Positions 10,740-46,371 of a DNA stretch of 64,000 bases are shown here, one piece after another. Within the stretch, counting starts at the first letter, position 1, and the number at the start of each line of letters is the position of its first letter. Made by a program: the position numbers and the translations under genes. The stretch covers positions 124,001 to 188,000 of the IMG/VR virus record IMGVR_UViG_3300008448_000001, one strand, 5' to 3'. A model generated the notes under the pieces. It was not told the origin of the DNA and did not search any database. It worked only from the letters and a program-made list of their open reading frames with translations.

Positions 10740-11239
10740 CGCTAAAGGCTGCCATGCGTGGTGCGTTGGACTTTTCGCAGGCTAACGTAAAAGATCACGG
10801 GTGGTGGCTTAAATGGCGTTACGTCACACGGTCTCTTGCAGCTGAAGAGCACACAGAGCTGGTTGGTAACTTGTACAGTCTAAGCCTGGCACTGTTGTCC
10901 AACTCGAGAATAGACACGGCGGCACAGCACAAGAGTACGCTTGAGCGGTACAGCACGTTGCGGGAAAGCAAGCAACCTTGGGCGGCAGCTTTGGAGTCGC
11001 AATATTTACGCAGCGAAGCCGACGAGTATGCTGTACAATGGGAAAAACTCACCGGGTGGAAACCGAACGACGCGGAGGCCTTGGCAAAGTGGGAAGAGGA
11101 AATTCGAAACGCTACGAGCGGCAAACGCGAAGAAAGAGAGCGGCAGGCAAGACAAGAGCAGAATCGGCTTGACACCTTCCACGCAGCTGTCGAAGAGATA
11201 CGTAAAAAGCGCTTAAAGCAGCAAGGACGCCGCCGATGA
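10706..11239 (+). CDS. Tail assembly chaperone extension (GT-type), reached by -1 frameshift
   Basis: Open -1 frame overlapping end of previous gene at heptamer 10706-10712; ends with ATGA overlap on tape measure start. Confidence 0.65.
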   Translation, partial: KFLERDRDAALTLKAAMRGALDFSQANVKDHGWWLKWRYVTRSLAAEEHTELVGNLYSLSLALLSNSRIDTAAQHKSTLERYSTLRESKQPWAAALESQYLRSEADEYAVQWEKLTGWKPNDAEALAKWEEEIRNATSGKREERERQARQEQNRLDTFHAAVEEIRKKRLKQQGRRR

Positions 11240-14200
11240 ACTACATGAACGACCCGAACATCCAGCTGTATTTGATGCAGCAGACCGGGTACTCCGGTTT
11301 CCCGGGTTTGGGTATGCCCGGACCCGGTGGAAACAACTTAGCCGCTACTGCAAACATGCACGGTCCGGCAGTTTTCGGTGCCGGTAGTGTAGACACCTCG
11401 CCTTTAGCGCCTTTCGGTCTCCACAACTACGGTCTTCCGGGGCAGTTATTAGGCGCCGCAGGCAACATATACCTGTCTCAACGCCTGCAACAAGCCGGTT
11501 TAATTTCGACCGGAAACGCGGCGTCTATGCAGCAAGCAATCGACGCAAGACAGATGCAAGCCACACAGCTTCAGGTAATGAACGGGGTCGCAAGCCAGGA
11601 TGCGGCTAACATCTACCAGTTTTTCCGGGGAAGCGCGGCAATCGCCGGGGTTCCGATGACATCTAGTCAGCGGTTTGCGGCACAGCAGATGGCGGGAAAC
11701 ATTGCCCAGCAAAGCCCGATGATTTCGATGCTTGTGCCCGGCGGATCCGAATTTCTGGACATGATGTCGGGTCCGTCCGGCAGCGTGCAGGCTATGGCGT
11801 CGCAGATGATGGAAGCCAACAGGTACCGCATCGACCCGGTCACGGGAAAGTACGGCTTAGGTGCGGATGCTAACACCGGACTCATTAAAAACGTTTTTAG
11901 CAACATGTTTGCCGCCGACAACATTCCTAGGATGCAAGGTCTGCGGGCTGGCGACGTAGGGCAAATTTATCGCACGTTGTCCGCAGAGGGATTGGCCGGT
12001 CCGACAACAAGTCTTCGAAACCGCACGCTTGACGCTATCGAAGCTGCAAGGCAAACGGGCGTCAGCGCGGAGGACCTGGCCAACGGTACCGGTATAAGTG
12101 CGGAAGCCCTTTCCGGTAACTTGAACGGGCTAAGCAACGCACAACTTGGACAGTTGCGTAAAAACTCTTCCGTGCAGGAGCAACTCACGAAGGCTGACGC
12201 GCAGCAGATCTCCAGTCAGCTTCAGGAATACGTGGGTGCAATCTCGGCTATGCGGGAAGTGTTTGGTGAAGCCGGAAACCCCAATGCACCCGTGCCACAG
12301 CTTATAGGCGCATTGAAAGCGTTGACCGGTGGCCAGATGCAGAAGTTCGACCCCGCGTCGCTTGCGAATATGGTTCGAGACATGCAGGCCATGAGCCAAA
12401 TGTCGGGCAAGAGCGTGGATCAGCTTTTGGCAATGAGCCAAACCGCTAACTCAATGAACACGACGATGCTCGGATCGCACGCAGCTAATTTCAATCCTGC
12501 AACGATGGCCGCGGGCGTGGCAGGCGGTATGGCTTTCTCTCAGGCCGGAGGCGCTACGGGATTCGGTGCGCTTAATCGACAACAAGCAGAACAGGCCACG
12601 ATGAGTTTGTTCAGTCGCGGCCTAGGCTCTGAAACGGCGCAAGCCATGGGTGCCTTGTTGCGTGTACGGCAGGCTGGTGGCTTTTCAAACAACGCCGCCG
12701 GGCAACAGCTTCAGGCGATTATGAACGCGGCGGCTGCTGGCGAGGACACGTACACCTTCAACGGAACCACTCACAACATGCCGACTAAACTTACCGAGTT
12801 TAGGTCTTTGGCAGCCGCAGGTGGTCTGGCAGGAGGCGATGCAAACACCTTTAACATGATGCTCACCGACACCACTGCGAACATGCGAGCGCTGGCGGAA
12901 AACCCGGAAATGCAACAGGTGGCTTTTCAGCAACAACGCCGTGAAATCAACCAGAAACTTAATCAAGTCATGGGCTTCAGGCTCAGCGGCGAAACGATTT
13001 TAAGGACGGGCATTCCCGATAATGCACAAAGGGCAGATGCTTCTCGTGCAATAAGTGCCGCCGGGCTTGACGCGTTAAACACGCTTTCTCCGGCTGAAAT
13101 GCAGAACCCGGAATTGCGAATAGGTGCCATGGCAGAGGCTATTCGCGCGGAAGCTGCAACCTACAACGTTACGATGTCGGACGAGCAGGCTCGAGCCGTT
13201 GCTGCGGGGCAATTTGGGCAAGCGGAACAGACGGTAAAAGGCTACGGCTTTGAGTCTTTTACGGCTTACTCGCAAGTTCACGGAAGCCAGGTTTCACAGG
13301 CACGCAATGCGGCGCAGCAAGCTGCGGCTGTGCGAAGCTCGGTAAATGAATCCATGGCTAAGATGCAGGGTGTCGGCGGTGTGCAGGGTCGTATCGGCTC
13401 CGCCATCATGCGTCAAGCCGATCGAGCAGCGGGCGGTCAGCCCGTTAACATGGATACGTTGCTACAGGATGTATTCGGCGGTGCCTTTTTGCCGGAGCAG
13501 CAGCAAATAAGCGGACCGCTTGCGCGGGTGCAAGCTGCGTACGAGAAGGCGCGAGCGTTAGAGGCGCAATTCGCTGAGGCTTCAACGCCCGAGGAGCGAC
13601 AACGTTTGCAAGAAGAAGCGAAACAAATAAAGACCGAACTCGATACGGCGATCGAGGAAGCCGGAAGCGCTATCGAGGTCAGCGGGCTGGGTGCTGCACA
13701 AAACTTGGCCAAGTTGACACTTGGGAATTACGACGAAGACGCCAAGAAGCTTGGCATGACGCCTGAGCAATACCTGGAAGCCGTCAAGTCCGGGAAAATG
13801 CCTTCATCACTTTTGGCGATCTCGGACAAAGAAGTTCTAGCCAAAGCCAAAAACGCAGAATCGATTATTTCTTCAACGGATCGCGATATCTCGCGTTTCG
13901 ATGCTGACCTGCAATCGAAAGACCCGGAAGTCCGACGGCGAGCGTCAGCTTCGGTTGCTGCTATCAGGGCTAAACGTGAAGTTGCTTTACGCGACAGGAA
14001 TGCCGGTATGCTGGCCATGGGTTTGACTCCGGGCGATCCGAAAGACGAGGCCGAGTATAAGAAACAGCTGGCTAATCAAGGCTCGATCGGCTTACTCGAA
14101 AGGCGAGCTAAAGACTACGAGGCGGGTCGAGAAGCGTTGCGGTCTCAAGGCCTCAGCGAGAAAGAAATCGACAACAAGATAGAAGAGTCCGTGAAGCTGG

Positions 14201-14760
14201 AGCAGACGGCAAGGGACAACGAAGCCGAAGCGCAAGCCAGGGTTTTGCCTACCGAAGAGCTGAACACGCTGGCTGACGCCTTCGGATTAGAGGCAGCGGA
14301 CGATCGCAAAGGTTTTGCCGAAAAGCTGAAAACGGAAGAAGGCGACTCGTCTGCAAATCAAAAAATGCTGGCGACCGTGCTTAAAAGGCTGGACAAAAAC
14401 AAGAACGTAGACGGTGCTAACGCAATTGAAAAGCTGGATTCTTTAACGGACAAGTATGCGGAAGCGAAAGGTGATCCCGAGAAACTTAAGCAGTTGGCTA
14501 AGTCTTACAACATGTCGGTCGGAGATTTGAACAAAATGATGCAGCAGACGGAGTTCTTGGGTATGCGGGAGGAAACCGGGACTTACACACAGGAAAAGCT
14601 TGCAAAGGAAATGTCTGCGGTTGCGGGACGAGATATCGCAGCGGAGACGGCGAGTGAAAGTGCTTCCACTCAGCATATTTCCGGCGAAATTCGAGTTACG
14701 GGTGACGTAGTAAACGGTACCGGTACGCTGCAAGGTGTTACAACCTCTCTGGGGAGCTAA
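11236..14760 (+). CDS. Tape measure protein
   Basis: 1174 aa, A/G/Q/M-rich and helical, follows chaperone pair. Confidence 0.75.
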   Translation: MNYMNDPNIQLYLMQQTGYSGFPGLGMPGPGGNNLAATANMHGPAVFGAGSVDTSPLAPFGLHNYGLPGQLLGAAGNIYLSQRLQQAGLISTGNAASMQQAIDARQMQATQLQVMNGVASQDAANIYQFFRGSAAIAGVPMTSSQRFAAQQMAGNIAQQSPMISMLVPGGSEFLDMMSGPSGSVQAMASQMMEANRYRIDPVTGKYGLGADANTGLIKNVFSNMFAADNIPRMQGLRAGDVGQIYRTLSAEGLAGPTTSLRNRTLDAIEAARQTGVSAEDLANGTGISAEALSGNLNGLSNAQLGQLRKNSSVQEQLTKADAQQISSQLQEYVGAISAMREVFGEAGNPNAPVPQLIGALKALTGGQMQKFDPASLANMVRDMQAMSQMSGKSVDQLLAMSQTANSMNTTMLGSHAANFNPATMAAGVAGGMAFSQAGGATGFGALNRQQAEQATMSLFSRGLGSETAQAMGALLRVRQAGGFSNNAAGQQLQAIMNAAAAGEDTYTFNGTTHNMPTKLTEFRSLAAAGGLAGGDANTFNMMLTDTTANMRALAENPEMQQVAFQQQRREINQKLNQVMGFRLSGETILRTGIPDNAQRADASRAISAAGLDALNTLSPAEMQNPELRIGAMAEAIRAEAATYNVTMSDEQARAVAAGQFGQAEQTVKGYGFESFTAYSQVHGSQVSQARNAAQQAAAVRSSVNESMAKMQGVGGVQGRIGSAIMRQADRAAGGQPVNMDTLLQDVFGGAFLPEQQQISGPLARVQAAYEKARALEAQFAEASTPEERQRLQEEAKQIKTELDTAIEEAGSAIEVSGLGAAQNLAKLTLGNYDEDAKKLGMTPEQYLEAVKSGKMPSSLLAISDKEVLAKAKNAESIISSTDRDISRFDADLQSKDPEVRRRASASVAAIRAKREVALRDRNAGMLAMGLTPGDPKDEAEYKKQLANQGSIGLLERRAKDYEAGREALRSQGLSEKEIDNKIEESVKLEQTARDNEAEAQARVLPTEELNTLADAFGLEAADDRKGFAEKLKTEEGDSSANQKMLATVLKRLDKNKNVDGANAIEKLDSLTDKYAEAKGDPEKLKQLAKSYNMSVGDLNKMMQQTEFLGMREETGTYTQEKLAKEMSAVAGRDIAAETASESASTQHISGEIRVTGDVVNGTGTLQGVTTSLGS

Positions 14761-17786: not shown

Positions 17787-18521
17787 ATGATGAACGATTA
17801 TTTAGAAGACGAATTTCGCCCGGCCTTTCAGACGTGGCAGGCCGATAAGACGCCAACCGGTAATGCCGCCTTTTTGAAAGCGATCGACCCTGTCATTAAC
17901 CAGGGCCTTCAAGCTTACGGTGACGACAGCCCTTTGCTGCGAAGCCGCGCAAGGTTATTGGCCTTAGACGCTGCGAACAAGTACGATCCTAAAAGGTCTA
18001 GGCTGCGGTCGCACATTGTTACAAATATGCAGGGACTCAGGCGGATATCTCGTCAACAAAACCAGATTGTCAACGCTCCCGAGCGTATTGTGCTTGAAAA
18101 CCACAAGCTTCGGTCGGCTACGCAAGAGCTTGCCGATGAGCTGGGGCGAGAACCAACGGATGCAGAGCTTTCCGATTTCATGCGGGTTTCGATTCCGCGT
18201 ATCGCCAAGATAAGGAAGTACCAGCCGGGATTCAGCACGGGTCAAGCCGAAAGTCCGGAATCAAATTTTGAAAGCATGGCCAGCAGGCTTCCTGGCGACA
18301 CCGGTGCCTCGGATCTCTGGTTACAGGTGGTGCATCAAGATTTAGATCCGATTGACCAGCAAATTTTAGAAATGACTCTCGGTATGAATAACAGGCGTAA
18401 GTTTTCCAACCTAGAGATCGCAAAAGCGCTGAACCGAACGCCAGCGGCTATTACGCAGCGGAAAGAAAAAATCCAACGTCTTTTAGACCAAGAACAAGCT
18501 CTTTCACCTTTTATCTCGTAA
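17787..18521 (+). CDS. Sigma-70 family RNA polymerase sigma factor
   Basis: Region 2 (AANKYDPKRSRLRSH), region 3 (ELGREPTDAELS), region 4 HTH (FSNLEIAKALNRTPAAITQRK). Confidence 0.85.
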   Translation: MMNDYLEDEFRPAFQTWQADKTPTGNAAFLKAIDPVINQGLQAYGDDSPLLRSRARLLALDAANKYDPKRSRLRSHIVTNMQGLRRISRQQNQIVNAPERIVLENHKLRSATQELADELGREPTDAELSDFMRVSIPRIAKIRKYQPGFSTGQAESPESNFESMASRLPGDTGASDLWLQVVHQDLDPIDQQILEMTLGMNNRRKFSNLEIAKALNRTPAAITQRKEKIQRLLDQEQALSPFIS

Positions 18522-18990: not shown

Positions 18991-19478
18991 TGTATTTTTC
19001 TGGAAGTGTTCAGCAATACAAAGGGAAAACAGTCGATTTTCTCATGTACGATGGGGCGAAACCCTCCGGTGACACGCAAGTCTTGCCTGCACTCGTACAG
19101 GAAGGTCAAAGCGGAGCGTTGATAACTGGCCCGGCTAAGCTGGCTCAACGATTTTTGCTCGAGCTGCTTACCGATAAGGGTTCGCTGCAGTACGACATTA
19201 ATCGCGGCACTTTTTTCATGACGCAGATCCGGAGCGGGTTAGCCCGGACGTCCGCCGACCTGTTTCAAATTTTCGCAGCTAGCGAACTGGACTTGCGAAA
19301 CAATTTACGCTTAGAAGATGACACCTCTTTTCCAGACGACGAGCGGTATGCTTCTTCGGAGCTTTTGGATGCCTCTTTCATAGGGGATGCGATTTACCTT
19401 AGAATACAGCTCAACAGCGTGGCTGGTGAGTCGCGAGAAGTTCTGTTTCCACTACGAATCCCGGCGGTTCAGCTATGA
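18990..19478 (+). CDS. gp25-like baseplate wedge / sheath initiator
   Basis: ITGPAKLAQRFLLELLTDKGS...RGT motif; precedes baseplate J. Confidence 0.7.
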   Translation: MYFSGSVQQYKGKTVDFLMYDGAKPSGDTQVLPALVQEGQSGALITGPAKLAQRFLLELLTDKGSLQYDINRGTFFMTQIRSGLARTSADLFQIFAASELDLRNNLRLEDDTSFPDDERYASSELLDASFIGDAIYLRIQLNSVAGESREVLFPLRIPAVQL

Positions 19479-21142
19479 CTCTAACCTATTCCGACTTTGA
19501 AATCTCCGATCTTTCGCAATTGGATGCAGCCGATGTGCAACAGACGCTGCTGCGGACTATTGCGCAGCTGCAAGCGTTGAATCCGACGTTGGATTTACGC
19601 CGAGGAGCTTTCCGCGACACCATTGCTTACTTGCAGTCAGTTTTGGGTACTGCCGCTCGCGTAAACTTGGAGCGGTACCAGTCTGCAAGAAGTCTACAAC
19701 GCATTCAAGAGGATCCGACGCTCGCTGACGAAACTGTGGTCAGCGAAGTGCTTTCCAACTGGGGTATTGTGCGAAAGACCGGCACCAAGGCAAGCGGGCC
19801 GGTCACGATCGAACTTTCAGCACTTCGACCGTTAACGATACCGCAAAACAGCGTGTTTGAAGCTAACGGCTTCCAATACTTGGCCACGGCGACTTTTATC
19901 GGAAGAATATCGGCTGCCCAAATACTGGGGAGCAACGACCGGCTGCTGGTTCCACTTAGCAACGGCAACTACGCTTTCACGATCGAGGTAGAAGCCGTGG
20001 ATATCGGTGCCGACAGGAAGCTGAATGCAGGCGACCTAATAGTCCCCAACCGCGCGGTCGTTAACTACGTCACAAGCTATGCCACGTCTTCTTTCGAGGA
20101 CGGAACCAACACCGAGACAAACGAAGAGCTTATTAACGAGTTGCAGCTGGGTGTCGCGGCAAAAACGCTCTCGAACCGCACGAACATGCGCGCCTACTTG
20201 CGAAGTCTGCCGCAGTTCGAGTCGGTCACAAATCAATCCATCGTCGGTTGTGGCGATCCCGAAATGCTGCGGGACAAACACACCATCTTCCCGACGCTTA
20301 CCGGCGGTAGGGTAGACTGGTACATACGCGGGCAATCTGCGTTGCAACGAAAAACGGTTGCAGTCGTGGCCACCTGCATGTCGGTATCAACGCTTACAGG
20401 AACAAGTGAGTGGCAGTTTGCTGTTCCGGCGACAACTCTTCCCGGGTTTTACGAGGTGGACAAGATACGCAAGGCAACCGACTCTGCTGTCGTGTCAGGC
20501 TTCGGTATCGTATCGGACACGCGTTACACCGCGTTACCTGCAAGCGGTTTCTCCCCGGACATTGCAACAGCAGAGGAGAGCGCATATTCCGCTTTCCAGT
20601 CCGCAATTATCCTTTTCACAGATACGGTCACATCGGTTGCAGATTTAGCCGTCGGTCAGACCGCAGAGTATGTTTACGAGATAACGGGCACGCCACATGT
20701 CCGTGAACTGCAGGATCTTGTTTCCAGCCGAGATATCCGGCACTACGGCGCCGATGCCTTGATCAAAGCCCCTGTCCCGTGCTTTGTCAGCGTGACTCTT
20801 ACGATAAACAAGGCTGCTGACGATGTTTCTCCGTCGCTAGAGCCTATTCGGTCCGCCATTGTGACGGCGATTAACTCCGTCGACTTCCAAGGCGTGTTAC
20901 CTGGTTCTTTGATCGTGGATACCGTGCACAACTACCTGCAAGGTCGATTGAACGTCACGGAACTGGATCTTTTGGGTCGGATTCGCATGCCGGACGGCAC
21001 CATCAAGTATTTACGCAGCGATGACGCCTTGATAATACCAGAACTTCCTGGAAAAATGGTAACCTCCAAGACAGTTCAGTTTTTTGCCGAAGCGATAGAC
21101 GTAAACTTGAACGTAATCTCCTCAATACCGGTTGCAACCTAA
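19475..21142 (+). CDS. Baseplate J-like protein
   Basis: WGIVRKTGTKASGPVTI, IEVEAVDIG, GTNTETNEEL motifs. Confidence 0.85.
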   Translation: MTLTYSDFEISDLSQLDAADVQQTLLRTIAQLQALNPTLDLRRGAFRDTIAYLQSVLGTAARVNLERYQSARSLQRIQEDPTLADETVVSEVLSNWGIVRKTGTKASGPVTIELSALRPLTIPQNSVFEANGFQYLATATFIGRISAAQILGSNDRLLVPLSNGNYAFTIEVEAVDIGADRKLNAGDLIVPNRAVVNYVTSYATSSFEDGTNTETNEELINELQLGVAAKTLSNRTNMRAYLRSLPQFESVTNQSIVGCGDPEMLRDKHTIFPTLTGGRVDWYIRGQSALQRKTVAVVATCMSVSTLTGTSEWQFAVPATTLPGFYEVDKIRKATDSAVVSGFGIVSDTRYTALPASGFSPDIATAEESAYSAFQSAIILFTDTVTSVADLAVGQTAEYVYEITGTPHVRELQDLVSSRDIRHYGADALIKAPVPCFVSVTLTINKAADDVSPSLEPIRSAIVTAINSVDFQGVLPGSLIVDTVHNYLQGRLNVTELDLLGRIRMPDGTIKYLRSDDALIIPELPGKMVTSKTVQFFAEAIDVNLNVISSIPVAT

Positions 21143-21143
21143 A

Positions 21144-22067
21144 ATGCCAAAGAAAGTCAGTGGTAAGTCGGAAGTCGTCAGAATTTTAACGAAATCCGAC
21201 ATGGCGACGTCAAAAACGCGCCAAAACAAGCAAGCTATCACGTTTGCCACCGATTACTTGGTTTTTTTCGGCTATTTGACCGTCGAACTGCTGAAAAGCG
21301 TGAGTATGGACGATATTCACGCTGGAATTAAGGTTTTTCAACGATATTTTGGCATAAAAGCAGACGGAATGCTCACCGAGGAGACACTTCGCGCCATGCA
21401 GGTTCCTCGCTGCGGTTGCCCGGACAAGTTGGACAAATCCAACGGAAAGCACGTAGAATTCTTGCGTGCTGCCGAAGTTGCAGCTGAAAGACGTGATCGA
21501 TGGAACAAAACAGGTTTGACTTACTTTGTTGCAGACTACGTCGGAGGCAAAATACCTAAATCCGAGCAACGCCGCATTTTCCAGGAAGCCTTCAAGGCTT
21601 GGGACGACGTGTGCGGTTTGGACATTTCCGAAAGTAAGGACGTCGAAACCACGGACATCGTCATCACCACAGGGAAAGGCCTTCAACATCAGTTTGATGG
21701 AAAAGGTGGGACGCTCGCTTGGGCTTACATGCCAAGAGGCGACAACGAAAAGCTACTGATGCGTTTCGACTTGGAAGAAACCTGGGTGGCAAACAAAGGC
21801 GAGCGGGGTATACTGTTATCTAACGTTGCATGCCACGAGTTCGGCCATCTGCTTGGGCTACTCCATTCGGATAGGAACCAGGCCTTGATGGCACCGTACT
21901 ACAACCCGTTCGTCGGAACACCACAATCGGTCGATGACATCTCTCGAATACAGAAGCTTTACGGGCCCAACCAAAACCCAGAGAAGCTCAAGTCGAACAT
22001 TGTTCAAACCAAAAATACCATCGAGGTAAAGTTACAACCGGGTCAGAAGTTAATCGTTACCAATTGA
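21144..22067 (+). CDS. Matrixin (M10A matrix metalloprotease) with PGBD-like prodomain
   Basis: FQRYFGIKADG prodomain, PRCGCPD cysteine switch, FDGKGGTLAWA, HEFGHLLGLLH zinc motif, ALMAPYY Met-turn. Confidence 0.93.
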   Translation: MPKKVSGKSEVVRILTKSDMATSKTRQNKQAITFATDYLVFFGYLTVELLKSVSMDDIHAGIKVFQRYFGIKADGMLTEETLRAMQVPRCGCPDKLDKSNGKHVEFLRAAEVAAERRDRWNKTGLTYFVADYVGGKIPKSEQRRIFQEAFKAWDDVCGLDISESKDVETTDIVITTGKGLQHQFDGKGGTLAWAYMPRGDNEKLLMRFDLEETWVANKGERGILLSNVACHEFGHLLGLLHSDRNQALMAPYYNPFVGTPQSVDDISRIQKLYGPNQNPEKLKSNIVQTKNTIEVKLQPGQKLIVTN

Positions 22068-22077
22068 AAGGAAGTTT

Positions 22078-22419
22078 ATGCTTGCTGAACTTACGCTGGA
22101 TTTAGAGACGCTGGTCAACGCTGTAAAGGCTGCCGCAGCTGTCGGTCTTTTGGGTGCCGCAGCTTTTTTCAGTTACCGGCATTTCGCCCCGAGACGCAAA
22201 GTGAATGCGAACGCGTTCCGTGAAGAATACAAACGAAAGGACTCCGGTCGCAGCAGCGATGCGCCGCCTCCGGTAGGTTTTGCGGAACACTTGCAGATCA
22301 TAGAAAACACGGCTCCAAACGCGGGACCGGAAGTTTGGTGGAGCTACGCAAAGGGCGAGCTCACCGAGGCAGAAGTCGCGATAGCCGAGGCCAAGCTGGC
22401 CACGCACAACAAACAATAA
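22078..22419 (+). CDS. Membrane protein, one N-terminal TM
   Basis: Hydrophobic AAAAVGLLGAAAFF followed by basic residues. Confidence 0.65.
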   Translation: MLAELTLDLETLVNAVKAAAAVGLLGAAAFFSYRHFAPRRKVNANAFREEYKRKDSGRSSDAPPPVGFAEHLQIIENTAPNAGPEVWWSYAKGELTEAEVAIAEAKLATHNKQ

Positions 22420-22430
22420 GGGCAATCTTG

Positions 22431-22817
22431 ATGAATACTGCACGGATCGCAGGCGAAGAAAATACACCCAGCTTCCCGTGGGCCATTTTGGTTTGCGGTT
22501 TGCTGGGTGTTTTGTTATTGGTTCCGACCAGCTGGTTTTCGCCAAACCGAAAAACGCTAAATGCGGATTTAGCGAATGAAGCTTTTGAAACCTACGAAAG
22601 TCTTTGGCGAATCCACCAAGGAAAAGCTGCCGACAGGTTAAGCACAGGCGAACTGCAAACTGAACAAGAAGTCTGGGAGTTTCAAGCCGCCGGGCAAGAA
22701 CCTGCTCGCAAGCTTGCTTTCGAAAAACTGGCCCGAGCCGAGGCCGACTACTTCAAAAACAAAGGCGGCTGGTCCAAAGAGTCGCACGAGTCCCTGTTAC
22801 GGAGCTATGCAAAATAA
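22431..22817 (+). CDS. Membrane-anchored protein
   Basis: N-terminal TM (WAILVCGLLGVLLLV) then helical domain; TAATG coupling to peptidase. Confidence 0.65.
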   Translation: MNTARIAGEENTPSFPWAILVCGLLGVLLLVPTSWFSPNRKTLNADLANEAFETYESLWRIHQGKAADRLSTGELQTEQEVWEFQAAGQEPARKLAFEKLARAEADYFKNKGGWSKESHESLLRSYAK

Positions 22818-23773
22818 TGATTTTTACGAGTTACAATTTCGAGCGAGAAGATCGCAAGTACTTGAAGTCGCTGCCTGTTTTACCGATGCAAAGTAGTGTG
22901 TGGCGGTCTTTCCGGCGGCCCTCCGAAGTGGCTATCGACTGGCACCGCGAGGAAAATCAGTTTCAGATCGGAAGTTGCCAAGGCAACTCGCTTTCCTCGG
23001 TACTAGAACGCTGCGCTTTCGTGGCCGGCAAGAAGGTGCAGCTCTCCAGAATCTTTGCGTACCTGGCAACACAGAAGATCGACGGGCTTCTCGGGTCTGA
23101 CAACGGGTCAACGGTTTCCGGCGGCGCGAAGCTGGCGATAGAGACCGGGTGTCCGCTGGAGAAGTTGACAGGGTACCCTCGGGCATACCCTGGCCGAGCC
23201 GAACGCAACGAGATTTTGAGTGAAGCTAATTACAAGGCGGGTGCTGAGTACAAGGCAAAATCTGCGTGGCAGGTTTCTCCCGATCACGACGAATTACTTG
23301 ACTTCATTGGTGGCGGGGGTGCCATCAACTTCGGTATTCGTTACGGGGGTTCGACAATACCCTCCGACCGAGTGATCCGTCGTTTCGTTCCAGGTCGCGG
23401 CGGTCACGCCATGTGCATCCTAGGCTACACCCGTGACGGCGACCTTCGTGCAATGAATTCGCACGGGGATGGGCAGTACTTGATCACGCCGAGCGCTTGG
23501 AAGGCCATGCTTGCTGACAGTTGGACTACTGCGATCGGCCTTATGGGATCCAAAGAGCCTGTGCCTGTAGATTGGTACAGTAATTCGCCATACTTCAAGA
23601 TAACGGAAAAGTCCGCCGAAGTCGAAGCGGAAGAAGAGCGAGAGCATCTGGCGGAAGAAGAGCGAGAGCATCTGCTCGAGTTACTCCACATGCATGAGGC
23701 GGACAGTCACGAAGAACCGACGAATGAGGCAGATGACTACGAGGAGTTTGACGATGAAGAAATTGGTAGCTAG
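22817..23773 (+). CDS. Papain-like cysteine peptidase (C1 family)
   Basis: NQFQIGSC (oxyanion Gln and catalytic Cys), GHAMCILGY (His), MNSHG (Asn); acidic tail. Confidence 0.85.
   Translation: MIFTSYNFEREDRKYLKSLPVLPMQSSVWRSFRRPSEVAIDWHREENQFQIGSCQGNSLSSVLERCAFVAGKKVQLSRIFAYLATQKIDGLLGSDNGSTVSGGAKLAIETGCPLEKLTGYPRAYPGRAERNEILSEANYKAGAEYKAKSAWQVSPDHDELLDFIGGGGAINFGIRYGGSTIPSDRVIRRFVPGRGGHAMCILGYTRDGDLRAMNSHGDGQYLITPSAWKAMLADSWTTAIGLMGSKEPVPVDWYSNSPYFKITEKSAEVEAEEEREHLAEEEREHLLELLHMHEADSHEEPTNEADDYEEFDDEEIGS
23627..23674 (+). repeat. 24 bp exact tandem duplication (AEEEREHL x2)
   Basis: GCGGAAGAAGAGCGAGAGCATCTG twice. Confidence 0.9.
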
Positions 23774-24359
23774 TTTTTTTACCGCCGCTTTACTGTTCTT
23801 GCTAGGGTGCTCACCTTCACCGCAACCGTTGAAAGACGATCTCGTTGAACGCTTCAACGCTGCGGTCACGGAATCCATCCAACAGTCCCACAGCGAGACA
23901 ATGTCGGAGTTGCAAAGTTACCGTTCGACACTGGAACGTATCGAACAAGCCGTCAACGATCTTCAAGCGAAGGCGAAAGAGCCGCAAGCGAATACAGTGC
24001 TTGCAAAGCCTGTGCAAGCGGCTAACGTACGCGTTGACGCTCCGACATTTTCAAACGGGAGCGTAACACGCATGCCGGGCTCAAACTGGAACGTAGAAGG
24101 TGACTGGAACTACACACTCGTTGAGCTTGCGGATCACCTTCGGCAAGTTCACGGTTTGAACGTAGACGGAAAAACCATGACCGAACTGCAAGCCATGCAC
24201 GATAATTTGCATAACGGCTACTCGGCTTATGGCTCGCAGATTCGATCCGTGAACGCTGCCCCTGTGACTCAATACTACGCAACAAACCGAGCCCCGACAG
24301 TTTTTCGCAGAAATCGTACCTACAGCACATGCCCGCAAGGGCAACCGTGTCCCCAATAA
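23754..24359 (+). CDS. Lipoprotein with coiled coil and His-rich domain
   Basis: GAGGAG RBS; MKKLVASFFTAALLFLLG-C lipobox; HLRQVHG...MHDNLHNG; ends CPQGQPCPQ. Confidence 0.8.
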   Translation: MKKLVASFFTAALLFLLGCSPSPQPLKDDLVERFNAAVTESIQQSHSETMSELQSYRSTLERIEQAVNDLQAKAKEPQANTVLAKPVQAANVRVDAPTFSNGSVTRMPGSNWNVEGDWNYTLVELADHLRQVHGLNVDGKTMTELQAMHDNLHNGYSAYGSQIRSVNAAPVTQYYATNRAPTVFRRNRTYSTCPQGQPCPQ

Positions 24360-24646
24360 TGTTAAACTACCCGGTCGGCATACCCGAGAAGTTGCATTCC
24401 ACCCTGTCGCAATTGTTGCAAACAGGGTGCGTAGATTTCAACGGCGGTACGGCGGACTTTTCCAACTTGCAGGAAGTAACTTTGCAGGCAGGTGTCCTTC
24501 GCTTCAATCCTCCCGTGAAGGTGCGAGTGAAAGTCGGCCCGATAATGGTAAAGACGACGATATCTGGTGTAAAAAACGTCGGCGGCGGCCTTAAGGTCGA
24601 AATCGATAACTCGCCCATCGACGTGCTTTTGAAAGCAGAGGATTAG
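24359..24646 (+). CDS. Small hypothetical protein
   Basis: TAATG coupling; beta-rich. Confidence 0.6.
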   Translation: MLNYPVGIPEKLHSTLSQLLQTGCVDFNGGTADFSNLQEVTLQAGVLRFNPPVKVRVKVGPIMVKTTISGVKNVGGGLKVEIDNSPIDVLLKAED

Positions 24647-24647
24647 T

Positions 24648-25001
24648 ATGGATTGGGAAAAGACGGCGACGGCATTCTGCGCTTCGCGCAACCTGGACGA
24701 TTTAACCTACATGCAAGCCGTAGGCAAAAATCGTAGCCGGGAAATATTTCGCATTGAAAAGGAGCGGGCAGACGTTCGCAGGGCAATGGACGCGGTCAAA
24801 CAAGCTTGGGAGGAAAACCCAAACGCTAATCGCGCTCAACTTGAAAAGAAGGCCTACAAGTTCATCACGGGCGGCGTCATTCTAACGCTATTACTGCAAG
24901 TTCTGCTGTCGGCTACAATGAAGCTTGCTATCGATTACTTTCTAGACAAGCTATTCCAAGAAAAAGCCGATGCCGCAACTTTACAAGTATCCTCAGAATG
25001 A
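24648..25001 (+). CDS. Membrane protein (possible holin-like)
   Basis: GAGGA RBS; one hydrophobic segment GGVILTLLLQVLLSA; holin role is a guess. Confidence 0.55.
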   Translation: MDWEKTATAFCASRNLDDLTYMQAVGKNRSREIFRIEKERADVRRAMDAVKQAWEENPNANRAQLEKKAYKFITGGVILTLLLQVLLSATMKLAIDYFLDKLFQEKADAATLQVSSE

Positions 25002-26529
25002 CTTCGATAGACCTGACTCGCTGCTGAGCGTACTGGGTAGCTTTTGGGCTTCGCTTTACCAGGGTAACGGCCTGGTTTCGGATATCAGTAACGTTGTCGG
25101 GCAGCTATACCAGCAAGTCAACACGCAGTTCCTTGAGCTAGTAAACAGCGTTTCACGAAAAAACGTGCCTGTCTATCATCAAGACGACTGGTACGCAGTG
25201 CAGGTAAGACGTTCAGCTCTTAACACCGACATAAGTTTGCTTGCGCGTTATCTCACGGGAACAGCCTACAAGTACAAAAGCCAAGCTGAACTTTTCTACG
25301 GACAAATACCGACTTCTCGTTATTACGCGATCAGTAAGCCTCGCGAGCTTGTAGAGTGCTCCGTCGTATTTGAACAGGTCACGCAGCCTACGGTGCAGAT
25401 GCTTAACGGCATCGACTTCTGGCTGGAAGAAAACACAGTTGTTTTTGTCGCTAACCCGTTCGACAACCCGGACATTCCGAAGAAGGAAATATTGAACGCG
25501 GTTGGGGAGATCGTTGACACTGAAATTACCTTGTGGTTTTATCGATCTAAGTGGGACTGGAATTACATTTACGACCAGTTCGGTTACGCTCTGAATTTGC
25601 CTATGCGATCCAGCGCAGGCTACAAGACGCTGGTGAACGCTGTACTCGAAAGCTTTAACGAGGGGACCAGCGCTCGTTCGCAGCAACAAGCTTTGGCCGC
25701 TGTCTTTGGCATACCTCTAGTGATCGATGCAACGGAAGTTGTCGAAGCCATTGCCACCGACGCAACAGGTTTGAAAGTGATAACGAACTCAAACGTGTAT
25801 GCATATCCTTCCACGGCAACGCCTGTCGTTTCCGTCGGGCAGACGGTTTACGCAGGCCAGTCGCTCACTGACACGTTCGAAATCATTGAGCTTAACCGGG
25901 GATTCGACGTTAATTGCGGCGTCGACAGTTTAACGATGGACACCGGTATGCTGACGAAGGGGTATCACGACGGCCTCGTTTTTTCGAACGCAAACGTCCC
26001 GGTACAAACAGAACTTGATGTCGACGGCTATACCAAGGTCACCTGGGATTTGGGCGGCTTTCCGCGAGACGTTTCGAAGTTTTGGGAGGATGTCCACGCA
26101 AACGGCATAGCTAAGAACGAAACATTAGCGATGCTGCTAGACGTGCGGGAGAACCCTGTCGGCCAGCCGACGGCTGACTCTTTGCCTGCGGAGATCAACC
26201 CGTTGAAGTTTCTGGTAGACAACCTGCTCCGGTTCAACGTTTTCATCGTGAAAGTTAAACCTGGAAGCAAACTGCAGAATAGGCTAGAATTTGTGCCTGT
26301 GTCGCAGCTTCGAAAGGTGATGCCACCGCACACGTTGATGATCTTGCTGGTGGACTTAGCGTATGCCGACAACCCTATCATCATGGAAGGTTACGGTACG
26401 CCGGAGTCGCCAGGGTACACTGAAAGCTTTGAAAACTTCCAGTGTTTAACCGTTTCCGAGTCGCTTGGATACGAAGCATACGTAACTGAAGAGTCAAAAA
26501 TAAAATCAATCAGTGGAAGGTGCGTTTAA
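24970..26529 (+). CDS. Baseplate wedge / structural protein
   Basis: C-terminal LRKVMPPHT resembles the PAH motif of gpI-type wedge proteins; synteny. Confidence 0.55.
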   Translation: MPQLYKYPQNDFDRPDSLLSVLGSFWASLYQGNGLVSDISNVVGQLYQQVNTQFLELVNSVSRKNVPVYHQDDWYAVQVRRSALNTDISLLARYLTGTAYKYKSQAELFYGQIPTSRYYAISKPRELVECSVVFEQVTQPTVQMLNGIDFWLEENTVVFVANPFDNPDIPKKEILNAVGEIVDTEITLWFYRSKWDWNYIYDQFGYALNLPMRSSAGYKTLVNAVLESFNEGTSARSQQQALAAVFGIPLVIDATEVVEAIATDATGLKVITNSNVYAYPSTATPVVSVGQTVYAGQSLTDTFEIIELNRGFDVNCGVDSLTMDTGMLTKGYHDGLVFSNANVPVQTELDVDGYTKVTWDLGGFPRDVSKFWEDVHANGIAKNETLAMLLDVRENPVGQPTADSLPAEINPLKFLVDNLLRFNVFIVKVKPGSKLQNRLEFVPVSQLRKVMPPHTLMILLVDLAYADNPIIMEGYGTPESPGYTESFENFQCLTVSESLGYEAYVTEESKIKSISGRCV

Positions 26530-35104: not shown

Positions 35105-37882
35105 ATGGCGCCTACGACGCAGTGCCCACAGGGACCGCAGTCACCCGTGTTTGACATCGTCAAATGCGACGTGCCTTGCATTTTCCCTATTCCAGGTGGA
35201 AACTGGCTGATAAACCCACAGGTTCCGCAAGCCCCAGCGGATATCTTTGATTGTCCGTCGCTGCCTGTTCCGTTGCTCGACCCGGATCCAATTTGCCCAA
35301 TTCTTTCCGCCCAAGACGACATCACCACCAACGTGGTACCGATCGGAAGCGAAAGAGTTATTTTTACAGTGACAAAGGGTCAATGCTGCGATTACGTGTT
35401 GAACTTGCAGGTAGACTTTCCCTGTCCGGAAATAACGGGAGAGGCGAACGTCACTACCGTAGGACCTGGCGGAGCACCCTTTGCCAATTTAAACGTCAAC
35501 AAGTCTGGCGATTGCTCCTTTGACATTCAGCTGAACATCGGCTTGCCCAGCCCGCAGCTTGGACCGCAAGGACCGCAAGGACCGCAAGGCCCACAGGGTG
35601 CAGAAGGCCCACAAGGTGCAGAAGGGCCGCAGGGTGCAGAAGGCCCACAAGGACCGCAGGGGCCGGCTGGCCCACAGGGCCCACAAGGCCCGCAAGGTTT
35701 AATCGGACCACAAGGTTTAATCGGACCACAAGGTTTAATCGGACCGCAAGGAGCGGAGGGACCTCAAGGTACGGCAGGCCCGCAAGGTACACCCGGCCCT
35801 CAAGGCCCAATAGGCCCTGACGGTAATCCCGGGCCCGACGGCAATCCTGGGCCTGACGGTAACCCTGGACCGGACGGCAACCCCGGTCCTGACGGCAATC
35901 CCGGAGACCAAGGACCCCAAGGCGACCGCGGACCCCAAGGTCACCGTGGCCCGCAAGGTTACCCTGGCTACACGGGGGCCACCGGCTATCGTGGACCACA
36001 AGGGTATCGAGGTCCGCAAGGTTATCGCGGCCCTCAAGGATATCGCGGAGCGCAAGGCTACAGAGGTCCGCAAGGCTACAGAGGTCCGCAAGGTTACGAG
36101 GGTCCGCAAGGGCCACAGGGTCCCCAAGGAAAACGCGGCCCACAAGGCTATCGCGGACCACAGGGCCACCGTGGGCCACAGGGTTACCGTGGTGCGGAAG
36201 GCCCGCAAGGCCCTTGTTGCGAGGGATCGACAGGTACCACTGGGCCAACTGGTCCAACCGGTCCTACAGGTCCAACCGGGCCTACGGGTCCAACCGGGCC
36301 GACCACGCCTACTTACGAGTTACTCATCAGTTGGGAATTCAACGATCAACTGACGCCCGAGGTTGACCCGCCAGCCCCGTTAAAGTACGCCGGAGACAGC
36401 GAACTTTTCTACGCGGACCCCGACGCGGAATCGGCAAGGCAACAAGCTTTCTCGTTGCACGGTCAGATTTACTTCAACAACGCTTCGCTGGCTGCGGTCA
36501 CGCACATCTATGTCGAGAAATCAAACTACAACAGCGTAGACATATCCGCGTTGCTCGCCACAGCTAAACCCACCGACACGTTAAAAACTCGCGTGATGTC
36601 CGACGTCAACAAGTTCGGCATTTATCGAGTCTTGGCCGTCACGGAAGAAACAACGCTTTTCGACTACACAGTTGAAGCGATAACAACTAACGGCGCTTAC
36701 ACGTTGCTGGATCAGGTCGTTCTCGAAATTCAACCCACAGGTGCCCAGGGTGCAACGGGTGCGACCGGCCCAACGGGTAGCGGTGTGCCGGCGGGCGGAT
36801 TGACCGGGCAGGTGCTGGCGAAAAACACTGACACAAATTACGACACGGTTTGGATAGACAACTACGCCAAGGAACTACGCGTCACCGTCAAGAACATGTC
36901 CGGCGGTGTCATCAACAAAGGCCAAGCCGTTATGGCCACCGGGGCGACAGGGGATACGATCGAAGTTACTCTGGCAAACGCGGACGGTACTGTTCTTCCA
37001 CGTTACATGCTCGGCATAGCATCTGAAAACATAGCCAGTGAAGCCTCGGGTTACGTTACCCTGATTGGCGACATGCAACACCTGAATACCCTCAGCTACA
37101 CTGTGGGTACGGTGCTGTGGTTGAATCCGAGCACGCCTGGCGGGTTAACGGCGACAGAACCGGCGGCGAGCACTATACGCATGCCGGTGGCCATCGTTAC
37201 GCGGCAGCATGTCGAGAGTGGTCGAATTTATGTCCGCATGTATTTGCAGCAGACGGCTTTGCATGAGCTTTTTGACGTTAAGTTCAGCAGCCTGCAAAAC
37301 GGTAATTACCTTCGCTACGATAGCACGCTTTCGGCTTGGAAGAACGATGCAACCAGTCCCACGGGGGCAACCGGAACACAGGGCGCTACAGGGGCCACGG
37401 GCCCAGGCACAACAGTAAATGCGACTGCGACAAACACCGACGCCACGTTCTATCCCGTGTTCGTCGCAGCCGCTGGGAGTAACCAGACACCGAGTGTCGA
37501 CACAACGGCACCGTCGCTGAGCTACAACCCGAGCACCGATTTGCTCAACGTTGGCGGTTTGACCGCGAACAAGTACGCAACAGGTACCGGCATAGTTTCG
37601 GTGGTAACGGGTACAACTCGATCGCTGAGCAGTGCGGACAACGGTATTGTCTTAGAGTGCAGCAGCAGTTCGGCAGTGACAGTCACGGTTCCCACCGGGC
37701 TTCCAGTGGGTTTCACACTTACAATAATTCAAACTGGAACAGGTCAAATATCGTTTAGCGCGTCTGGGACCACGATAAACAACCGTCAAAGCCACACCAA
37801 GACCGCCGGGCGATGGGCCGTGGTATCGCTGATTCAACGTAGTACTAACAACTTCATTTTGGCTGGGGACACTGCCGCATAA
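35105..37882 (+). CDS. Collagen-like tail/capsid fibre protein
   Basis: Long Gly-X-Y tract flanked by Cys-rich N-terminus and several fibre-type domains. Confidence 0.85.
35561..36303 (+). repeat. Collagen Gly-X-Y coding repeats in blocks ([30 protein letters not shown])
   Basis: 9 and 18 bp periodic repeats with synonymous variation. Confidence 0.95.
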
Positions 37883-46234: not shown

Positions 46235-46308
46235 GTGACCGTAGCTCAATAGGTTAGAGCAGGAGACTCATAATCTCTCGGTTCCCGGTTCAAGTCCGGG
46301 CGGTCACA
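46235..46308 (+). tRNA. tRNA with CAT anticodon, probably tRNA-Ile2 (otherwise elongator Met)
   Basis: Acceptor GTGACCG/CGGTCAC, D arm GCTC/GAGC, anticodon loop CTCATAA, T arm CCCGG-TTCAAGT-CCGGG, discriminator A, CCA not encoded. Confidence 0.92.
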
Positions 46309-46371
46309 CTGCTGACAACTGCTACGTAGCAGCTGTTACCTTGTTTGTTAGACCCTTTCACAGGAGTTGAT

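Follow-up and report, generated by a model that had tools for sequence, protein, structure and literature searches.

We have examined a 64,000-nucleotide stretch (the window) of the complete 204.8-kb genome of an uncultured marine phage, in which seven co-oriented open reading frames are tightly packed between a baseplate J gene and a conserved gene for a 519-aa protein. The features are as follows, in window coordinates.

19475 to 21142, + strand: baseplate J-like protein, 555 aa; upstream boundary, not part of the cassette.
21144 to 22067, + strand (alternative TTG start at 21132): g1, matrixin (M10) zymogen, 307 aa, without a signal peptide.
22078 to 22419, + strand: g2, 113-aa single-pass membrane protein, one TMD at residues 14-33.
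22431 to 22817, + strand (the ORF opens at 22335): g3, 128-aa protein with one N-terminal TMD, a Pro-rich linker and a conserved helical domain.
22817 to 23773, + strand: g4, xylellain-type C1A (papain-family) cysteine peptidase, 318 aa, without a signal peptide.
23754 to 24359, + strand (the ORF opens at 23694): g5, 201-aa lipoprotein (lipobox LLGC, Cys19).
24359 to 24646, + strand (start set by homologues): g6, soluble protein of about 95 aa, without a signal peptide.
24648 to 25001, + strand: g7, 117-aa protein with a cytoplasmic N-domain and a C-terminal TMD.
24970 to 26529, + strand: conserved 519-aa late protein; downstream boundary.

The initial annotation had described this order of protease, membrane and lipoprotein genes, and the observation is confirmed, as all seven + strand ORFs exist as described. 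Gaps between genes range from -32 to +11 nt, and no + strand terminator-like site lies between 19.4 and 30.6 kb. The arrangement is not chance, as it is syntenic in relatives whose proteins have diverged to 40-60% identity. Upstream, the J protein matches Pfam Baseplate_J (1.8e-9) and phrog_6 baseplate wedge (3.1e-14) and is syntenic in all jumbo relatives. Downstream, the 519-aa gene is syntenic at 35-75% identity in all jumbo relatives but returned no Pfam, PHROG or NCBIfam hit, and its designation as a wedge gene in the initial annotation is therefore putative.

g1 is a complete matrixin zymogen by sequence. It matches Pfam Peptidase_M10 (PF00413; 1.3e-33, 116.6 bits against a curated cut-off of 24) over profile positions 1-159 of 159 and has a PG_binding_1-like prodomain (1.3e-6), a PRCGCPD cysteine switch, the zinc-site motif HEFGHLLGLLH and a Met-turn. 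R89, C90, G91, D94, H231, E232, H235, G238, H241 and M249 are invariant in 20 homologues of 40-69% identity, within a family of at least 256 proteins. In contrast to cellular MMPs, no N-terminal hydrophobic segment is observed in g1 or its homologues.

g4 gave no Pfam hit at E<=0.1, PF00112 included, and only a few of its homologues carry PF00112 or PF13529, indicating a divergent subfamily. However, the papain motifs are present, with Q48, C54, H197 and N214 at papain spacing and invariant in 23 homologues of 52-95% identity. The AF2 model (pLDDT 87) best matches xylellain (PDB 3OIS, E 8.6e-13) in a Foldseek search of the PDB, followed by cathepsins and papain at around 1e-8 to 1e-7, and its AFDB and Atlas neighbours are C1A. 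Neither the signal peptide nor the I29 prodomain of classical secreted papains is found, as about 45 residues without a hydrophobic leader precede Q48, which is the short xylellain type. An acidic C-terminal tail (residues about 265-318) occurs only in the closest relatives. The family has at least 171 proteins.

Three of the neighbours are single-pass membrane proteins by hydropathy. g2 is predicted to be N-out/C-in (flanking charges -3/+5) with a conserved cytoplasmic C-terminal helix (..APNA.P.VWWEYAKAEMTEAEVAIAEAKLA), and returned no PHROG or Pfam hit. In g3, the constant partner gene directly upstream of the C1 peptidase, F52, Y55, E56, W59, R93 and H119 are invariant. g7 is predicted to be N-in/C-out (flanking charges +3/-2). 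None of the three has similarity to any known holin in the PHROG search, and the soluble domain of g3 is better conserved than its TMD, which is atypical for holins. g5 is preceded by a GAGGAG Shine-Dalgarno sequence and has a predicted long helix at residues 28-75, a Pro-rich linker, a small His-rich domain at 105-160 and a C-terminal S-CPxGxxC motif. H128, H133, H149 and C193 are invariant and W112, H153 and C199 near-invariant in a family of 235 representatives. The AF2 model of g5 has pLDDT >90 for 105-160, with no PDB or Atlas fold match. g6 returned no family hit and travels with the module in part of the family.

The initial annotation, finding no recognisable muramidase or amidase in the 42-kb late region, proposed, against the background of lysis cassettes that combine a holin, a hydrolase and a TM-protein/lipoprotein spanin pair, that the two proteases replace or supplement the endolysin for a host with a protein-rich envelope and that the C1 enzyme might activate the MMP zymogen. 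This interpretation is only partly supported. Three conditions that would have argued against it had been set beforehand, namely a canonical lysis cassette elsewhere, genes that are not co-conserved, and products that are baseplate parts. With respect to the first, no lysozyme, amidase, transglycosylase or PG-peptidase family was found in the complete genome. PF00959, PF01510 and PF01464 are absent at E<=0.1, the only PG_binding_1 is that in g1, and no PG-hydrolase family appears in Pfam scans (E<=1e-3) of all 214 ORFs of 90 aa or more, although for one third of the genome this excludes hits weaker than about 2.6e-5. GH24 and SLT are also absent from the records of five relatives. As planctomycetes do have peptidoglycan (PMC12673574), a PG hydrolase may still be needed and may simply be unrecognisable within these limits.

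With respect to the other two conditions, g3 to g7 form a portable module that is not inherited with the baseplate genes only and is not a set of baseplate parts, as g3, C1, g5, g6 and g7 occur without J or the 519-aa gene in other contigs and in a prophage. C1 homologues of 45-61% identity lie in unrelated, smaller phage contigs with no J, MMP or 519-aa genes, yet with the same neighbours, in the order TM ORFs, g3, C1, exported protein, g6 and C-terminal-TMD protein. Using profile HMMs, g3 is found directly upstream of C1 in 13 of the viral contigs scanned and in 9 of 15 Planctomycetota C1 loci. In the loci compared (L numbers), g2 is detected upstream of C1 in L024 and L047, g6 in L022, L023, L024, L047 and L111, and g7 downstream of C1 in L022, L024, L023 (weakly) and the Planctomycetota loci L103 and L104. 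Of the C1 loci of >=31% identity, 19/21 have a small TM ORF within 1.6 kb upstream and 17/20 have an exported protein next downstream, against a background of 9%. TM ORFs of 69 aa (L022) and 61 aa (L047) upstream of C1 hit phrog_9987 holin at 2.8e-5 and 3.3e-4, respectively. In an about 40-kb lambda-like prophage of Planctomycetota genome G358, the cassette lies between SSB/replication genes and the GpA terminase, where lambda keeps its lysis genes. This prophage has a portal, ClpP, a gpT head protein, a tape-measure protein and an integrase, and no strong PG-hydrolase hit.

The matrixin, in contrast, is not part of the portable module. g1 directly follows baseplate J in every jumbo relative, including GC-rich ones that lack the C1 module and in which g2-g7 are replaced, although g1 homologues also occur elsewhere. 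This co-variation raises the possibility that the matrixin, and perhaps the C1 peptidase, are entry enzymes packaged with the baseplate that digest the proteinaceous wall from outside when the tail contracts, as T4 gp5 lysozyme does for peptidoglycan, the membrane and lipoprotein genes being unrelated passengers. The absence of a signal peptide from both enzymes, the failure to find a PG-degrading domain in any tail protein and a cysteine switch that could keep a virion enzyme latent are consistent with this. However, we consider this reading unlikely, as the C1 gene travels with membrane and exported proteins rather than tail genes, occurring away from baseplate genes in contigs and in one shown prophage, while exported thioredoxin partners and holin neighbours cannot be virion parts. 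In addition, MMP-like genes in other viral contigs sit beside small TM ORFs, an esterase/lipase or the terminase.

The slot after the matrixin is variable cargo in relatives, holding three secreted proteins in L116, L118 and L120. This, the location among tail genes and the many exported or membrane-bound products could instead suggest envelope remodelling or superinfection exclusion, in which surface receptors are altered or destroyed during infection, as by T5 Llp and Cor-type lipoproteins, which are encoded among tail genes. This is an improbable reading, since the two enzymes have no export signal and would need a membrane lesion to reach the envelope, the lambda-type position in the prophage and the holin neighbours fit lysis better, and exclusion genes are usually early or lysogenic rather than part of a late operon.

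The guess of a host with a protein-rich envelope is borne out. The C1 profile hits 25/398 genomes of one Planctomycetota order and 4/401 genomes across the phylum, all four in that order, but 0/381 and 0/381 genomes of two other phyla. Only one locus (G358) was shown to be a prophage, however; the other genome hits could be remnants or cellular genes, and the link between the jumbo phage itself and Planctomycetota is indirect, resting on shared cassette families at 31-41% identity. Planctomycete envelopes are protein-dominated and have cysteine-rich YTV wall proteins (PMC12673574).

A redox theme, missed in the initial annotation, emerges from the exported partners, which are CxPC thioredoxins or His/Cys-rich proteins. 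The exported protein after C1 is a thioredoxin with CGPC, CAPC, CVPC, CEPC or CPPC in G358, G464 (fused to a trypsin-like peptidase), G433, G608, G606, L027, L041 and L111, the last assigned from the CxPC motif only, while L002 gives only a weak hit. g5 itself has no Trx hit and no CxxC, having CPQGQPC and conserved His residues in the same slot. Spanin function remains unsupported and the analogy is weak, as the lipobox of g5 is not conserved among its relatives, several of which have only a signal or anchor sequence, and g2 and g7 have mainly cytoplasmic domains; a complex prediction for g5 with g2, g3 and g7 scored 0.01, a value that provides no answer. Activation of the MMP by C1 likewise remains unsupported.

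Combined, these results suggest, with moderate confidence and from sequence and structure prediction alone, that g2-g7 form a late-expressed, holin-dependent lysis module adapted to a planctomycete envelope, with which g1 may act as a co-lysin. The analysis shows that the genes sit in one late operon, that the C1A peptidase and the matrixin lack export signals, that three neighbours are single-pass membrane proteins and that g5 is an exported lipoprotein with conserved His and Cys residues. The remainder, including host lysis itself, is inferred. In this view, the peptidase, and probably the latent matrixin, accumulate in the cytoplasm until one or more of g2, g3 and g7 permeabilise the inner membrane at the end of infection and release the enzymes. 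In the periplasm the exported redox partner, g5 here and a CxPC thioredoxin in most relatives, would reduce disulfides, either those of the cysteine-rich wall proteins or the catalytic thiol of the peptidase itself, and the peptidase(s) would then digest the protein scaffold that holds the cell together, rather than cutting peptidoglycan, so that the cell bursts. An exported reductant implies that the peptidase works outside the cytoplasm although it has no signal peptide. The cysteine-switch matrixin would be safe in the cytoplasm and unlatched outside it, but may instead, or also, be carried by the virion. The location in the middle of a baseplate operon is unusual for lysis genes, although late timing does fit. 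A cytoplasmic role, in which both proteases process phage structural proteins or cleave host (for example defence) proteins, is consistent with the lack of signal peptides, with the predicted cytoplasmic location of g6 and the large domains of g2 and g7, and with reports of phage-borne xylellain-type C1A peptidases without a stated role (PMC10380794). This appears very unlikely, as it does not explain the constant exported CxPC thioredoxin or lipoprotein partner, the holin neighbours or the lack of any other lysis enzyme.

The closest known arrangement is the holin-endolysin-spanin cassette of tailed phages (lambda S-R-Rz/Rz1; P2 Y-K-lysABC), with which the present genes share the organisation as clustered, translationally coupled late genes, a putative wall-degrading enzyme without a signal peptide flanked by small membrane proteins and an exported or lipoprotein component, the position between replication and terminase genes in the G358 prophage, and PHROG holins next to the enzyme in L022 and L047. 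They differ in that the enzyme is a C1A protease and not a PG hydrolase, the exported partner is a thioredoxin or His/Cys protein rather than a short Pro-rich o-spanin, no embedded or overlapped Rz/Rz1-type pair is present, g2, g3 and g7 match no holin family, and the cassette is here inserted in a baseplate operon. The proposed principle, lysis enzymes tailored to an unusual host wall, is the same as in envelope-specific accessory lysins such as the mycobacteriophage LysB esterase and the PeiP/PeiW pseudomurein endoisopeptidases of methanogen viruses, the latter also thiol peptidases; these belong to different enzyme families and hosts, and neither is known to be paired with an exported thioredoxin. 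CHAP and NlpC-P60 endolysin domains (clan CA PG peptidases) likewise use papain-like Cys-His catalysis for cell-wall lysis, but the fold search places g4 with true C1A proteases (papain, cathepsins, xylellain) and not with CHAP or NlpC, and g4 has no cell-wall-binding domain.

Xylellain and other short bacterial C1A peptidases share with g4 the Q-C-H-N set and a short N-terminal extension in place of an I29 prodomain, and the 3OIS match is aligned over the whole length, albeit at only 21% identity. Xylellain-type peptidases are reported to have been acquired by Myoviridae and Siphoviridae (PMC10380794), although no published function for the phage copies was found in the literature searched. 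The phage family is a distinct, large, mostly viral clade with fixed membrane and redox neighbours. g1 had no match in 50,697 GenBank phage records. Compared with matrix metalloproteinase zymogens, it shares the full profile match, PRCGxPD switch, HExxHxxGxxH and Met-turn but lacks a signal peptide and a hemopexin domain, is encoded by a phage next to baseplate J and, as judged by eye, has LAWAY in place of the LAHAF structural-zinc segment.

The genome examined is a single 204,794-bp contig with a 101-bp terminal overlap, classed by IMG/VR as a virus with direct terminal repeats and estimated by CheckV to be 100% complete. GC content is 51.7% and about 85% of the greedy ORFs lie on the + strand. 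The genome encodes DNA polymerase A, a sigma-70-like protein, a GpA-type terminase, collagen-repeat proteins and many glycosyl- and sulfotransferases. Outside the window, in ORF sets covering about 56-124 kb and 122-205 kb, multi-subunit RNA polymerase domains (Rpb2_6 7.6e-44, Rpb1_2, Rpb1_5), an RNAP alpha C-terminal domain, three pentapeptide-repeat proteins (1.3e-60), several sulfotransferases, a SET domain and a ferritin were detected, suggesting a largely autonomous transcription apparatus. The sigma-70-like gene (window 17787-18521, +; Sigma70_r3 1e-7, relatives also showing r4) sits inside the baseplate gene block and is conserved there in all jumbo relatives at 41-85% identity. A 925-aa protein with collagen triple-helix repeats (window 35105-37882, +; 3e-36) is probably a fibre, with a second collagen-repeat protein encoded elsewhere in the genome. 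ARAGORN detected a tRNA-Met in the window (46235-46309) and, outside it, at genome 70737-70811, a tRNA with anticodon TCA (called SeC) which could be an opal suppressor, although ORF coverage with the standard code is 97%, so recoding is not obvious. In blastn and tblastn searches, neither the region nor its C1, MMP or baseplate J proteins matched any of 50,697 GenBank phage records, whereas homologues come from Tara, GOS and other aquatic metagenomes. This is an uncultured marine jumbo myovirus lineage.

The initial annotation described seven tightly packed genes in the baseplate region, and this observation was confirmed. All seven ORFs are present on the + strand, separated by -32 to +11 nt, as follows:

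21144-22067 (+), g1, complete matrixin (MMP) zymogen with a PG_binding_1-type prodomain

(+), g2, membrane protein, predicted N-out/C-in, with a conserved cytoplasmic C-terminal helix

(+), g3, protein with an N-terminal TMD, a proline-rich linker and a conserved helical domain

22817-23773 (+), g4, C1A (papain-family) cysteine peptidase by motifs and predicted fold, referred to as C1

starting at 23754 (+), g5, lipoprotein with a GAGGAG Shine-Dalgarno sequence and the lipobox LLGC

24359-24646 (+), g6, small soluble protein

(+), g7, protein predicted to be N-in with a C-terminal TMD

No + strand terminator-like site lies between 19.4 and 30.6 kb, and a promoter and terminator scan returned no more sites than in shuffled sequence. 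None of the seven proteins has a hit in PHROGs, and NCBIfam gave only sub-threshold matches, mainly metallopeptidase families for g1. g1 matches Peptidase_M10 at 1.3e-33 over the whole profile, and in 20 homologues of 40-69% identity the PRCG..D cysteine switch, HExxHxxGxxH and the Met-turn are invariant. g4 has no Pfam hit of its own but belongs to a family of more than 171 proteins with invariant Q48, C54, H197 and N214 at papain spacing. Its AF2 model (pLDDT 87) matches xylellain (3OIS, 8.6e-13) and then papain and the cathepsins, and does not match CHAP or NlpC enzymes. A CHAP- or NlpC-type peptidoglycan (PG) peptidase was therefore rejected for g4, as the fold search places it with true C1A enzymes. 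Its C-terminal tail (window 23600-23773), which overlaps the start of g5, is highly acidic, contains a tandem duplication (EEEREHLAEEEREHL) and occurs only in the closest relatives, most homologues ending at about residue 265. Neither enzyme has a signal peptide. g5 contains a predicted long helix (residues 28-75), a linker, a confidently modelled small domain (105-160) with invariant H128, H133 and H149, and a conserved C-terminal S-CPxGxxC motif. A profile search against PDB sequences and Foldseek shape searches of the g5 model against PDB and Atlas found no credible match. Complex prediction of g5 with g2, g3 and g7 gave a score of 0.01, a value which is evidence neither for nor against an interaction. 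For g6, a chagasin- or staphostatin-like inhibitor of the C1 peptidase was considered, but only as a possibility.

A canonical endolysin was not found. PF00959, PF01510 and PF01464 are absent from the genome at E<=0.1, and the only PG_binding_1 is the one in g1. A Pfam scan of all 214 ORFs of 90 aa or more, using alignments as carriers, revealed no lysozyme, amidase, transglycosylase, M15, M23, CHAP or NlpC family at E<=1e-3, although for one third of the genome hits weaker than about 2.6e-5 are not covered. GH24 and SLT are also absent from five relatives' records, two of which are at least 93% complete.

Gene order is conserved in jumbo relatives (C1 60-72% identical, neighbours 40-60%), being sigma - x - x - J - MMP - g2 - g3 - C1 - g5 slot - g6 - g7 - 519 aa, where J is baseplate J and the last is a conserved 519-aa gene. 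Two facts, however, separate the matrixin from the rest. Firstly, more distant, GC-rich relatives (J 41-44% identical) keep J-MMP but carry three secreted proteins where g2-g7 would be. In these relatives (contigs L116, at 10915-14202, L118 and L120) the three proteins, of about 520-590, 230 and 250-260 aa, lie between J-MMP and the 519-aa gene, and similar secreted pairs flank MMP genes in unrelated contigs (L122, L126 and L128), suggesting a second module associated with the MMP. Secondly, C1 homologues of 45-61% identity occur in unrelated, smaller phage contigs that lack J, MMP and the 519-aa gene, with neighbours of the same kind as in the window: small TM ORFs, g3, C1, an exported or lipoprotein partner, g6 and a C-terminal-TMD protein. 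Profile HMMs confirmed this, as the g3 family lies directly upstream of C1 in 13 of the viral contigs scanned and the g5, g6 and g7 families recur downstream. Among C1 loci with at least 31% identity, 19/21 have a small TM ORF within 1.6 kb upstream and 17/20 have an exported protein next downstream, compared with a background of about 9% among 701 other ORFs of the same loci. More distant C1-like genes lack this context. At locus L111, the enzyme slot holds a divergent 374-aa protein whose nearest Atlas clusters are also viral C1 peptidases.

Signatures of lysis were detected in a subset of these loci. In viral contigs L022 and L047, a 69-aa and a 61-aa TM ORF upstream of C1 match phrog_9987, annotated holin, at 2.8e-5 and 3.3e-4, and L022 continues into HNH and terminase genes. 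The strongest case is the chromosome of Planctomycetota genome G358, in which the C1 gene (E 8.6e-72; 41% identical to g4) lies in a lambda-like prophage of about 40 kb carrying a DNA polymerase III beta-clamp homologue, SSB, methylases, a GpA terminase, a lambda-family portal, ClpP, a Mu gpT head protein, a tape-measure protein and an integrase. The cassette sits between the replication genes and the terminase, where lambda keeps S-R-Rz. No PG-hydrolase family appears among that prophage's strong Pfam hits.

The distribution of C1 points to a host group. The C1 profile hits 4 of 401 genomes sampled evenly across Planctomycetota, all four belonging to one order, and 25 of 398 genomes of that order at E<=1e-20 (best 2.6e-76). 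In contrast, it hits 0 of 381 and 0 of 381 genomes in the phyla of a Gaiellaceae MAG and a Chloroflexus MAG, a census that does not cover Proteobacteria, Bacteroidota, Cyanobacteria and Verrucomicrobiota. Profile searches replaced a pattern-based scan of all GTDB genomes, which was saturated and missed the prophage copies. In 9 of 15 of the Planctomycetota C1 loci the g3 family lies directly upstream, and in two the g7 family lies downstream. The order contains a MAG labelled 'uncultured Planctomycetaceae bacterium', and a weak 'Planctomycete cytochrome C' domain hit occurs in a secreted protein of a GC-rich jumbo relative. The MMP profile gave no host signal, as only distant cellular matrixins, matching in the catalytic domain only, were found in the 401 Planctomycetota genomes. 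The host of the jumbo phage itself is therefore inferred, not shown. The jumbo relative L118, a 177-kb contig, is classed by IMG/VR as a 'provirus' and, if that is correct, its flanks could reveal the host directly.

The exported protein encoded immediately after C1 shows a redox theme that extends across several loci. A thioredoxin-fold protein with an intact CxPC motif occupies this slot in G358 (CGPC, a lipoprotein), G464 (CGPC), G433 (CAPC), G608 (CVPC) and G606 (CVPC), and at loci L027 (CGPC, a lipoprotein) and L041 (CEPC, a lipoprotein). In L111 the evidence is the motif alone (CPPC), without a thioredoxin profile scan, accompanied by DnaJ-like CxxC pairs, while the jumbo relative L002 gives only a weak hit with CVFC, which is not CxPC. 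In Planctomycetota genome G464 (L177:2314-3777) the thioredoxin is fused to a trypsin-like serine peptidase, which adds a third protease class to the same cassette type. In the window the same slot holds g5, with its conserved His and Cys residues. An exported reductant paired with a cysteine protease that has no export signal implies that the protease is meant to work outside the cytoplasm after a membrane lesion, which is the logic of a holin-dependent lysin. This also fits the host, as the 2025 review of the phylum describes envelopes dominated by protein, cysteine-rich YTV wall proteins and only later-detected peptidoglycan (PMC12673574).

The constant position of the matrixin after J argues for a tail-linked role, whereas its lack of a signal peptide and conserved cysteine switch fit either a latent virion enzyme or a cytoplasm-safe lysin. 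MMP-like genes in other viral contigs lie among small TM ORFs (L141), just upstream of the terminase (L150), or next to an esterase/lipase and a C-terminal-TMD protein (L122), contexts that are again lysis-like. In L122, an unrelated viral contig, the esterase/lipase (10960-11562; phrog_21992, 5.3e-29) directly follows the MMP homologue and precedes the C-terminal-TMD protein, an arrangement that recalls LysB-type accessory lysins.

Combined, these results partly support the interpretation in the initial annotation of a protease-based lysis or envelope-breaching system. With moderate confidence, g2-g7 are best read as a portable, holin-dependent lysis module for a planctomycete envelope that combines proteolysis with disulfide reduction. 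The presence and order of the genes, their recurrence with C1 and the prophage position in G358 are results of the sequence analysis, while lysis itself, holin-dependent release, reduction and proteolysis of the wall, and the host of the jumbo phage are inferred. The inclusion of g1 in the module, a spanin role for any component and the suggestion in the initial annotation that C1 activates the MMP are, on present evidence, possibilities only. A more far-reaching reading, which we consider unlikely although it is not excluded, is that phages of planctomycetes lyse their hosts with no peptidoglycan hydrolase at all. They would use 'reductive proteolysis', in which a holin-released C1A cysteine protease, plus in the jumbo clade a cysteine-switch matrixin, works with an exported thioredoxin-type reductant to dismantle a disulfide-cross-linked protein sacculus. 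If so, protein rather than murein is the load-bearing wall layer in these bacteria, and the matrixin's cysteine switch would serve as a compartment sensor, latent in the cytoplasm and unlatched in the periplasm.

Phage lysis cassettes are known as a kind of system, but the enzymes and the redox partner are new to it. Xylellain-type C1A peptidases were acquired by Myoviridae and Siphoviridae, as noted without an assigned function in PMC10380794. Literature searches on jumbo phage matrixins, planctomycete phage endolysins or lysis, and papain-like or other protease-based lysis cassettes found nothing relevant, and the 2025 review of the phylum mentions phages only in passing (PMC12673574). A lysis module built from a papain-family protease, an exported thioredoxin or His/Cys protein and a matrixin zymogen would be a new enzymatic solution to phage lysis. 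It would give a genetic handle on the old question of whether protein or peptidoglycan mechanically holds the planctomycete envelope together, and would supply candidate enzymes for lysing planctomycete cells in the laboratory. It also assigns a testable role to the xylellain-type C1A peptidases that are widespread in uncultured tailed phages. Structural neighbours of g4 in Atlas include bacterial clusters whose members carry choline-binding repeats, PG_binding_1 or Phage_lysozyme, most of which, though not the lysozyme-annotated one, also carry Peptidase_C1. C1-type domains may therefore act on cell walls more widely.
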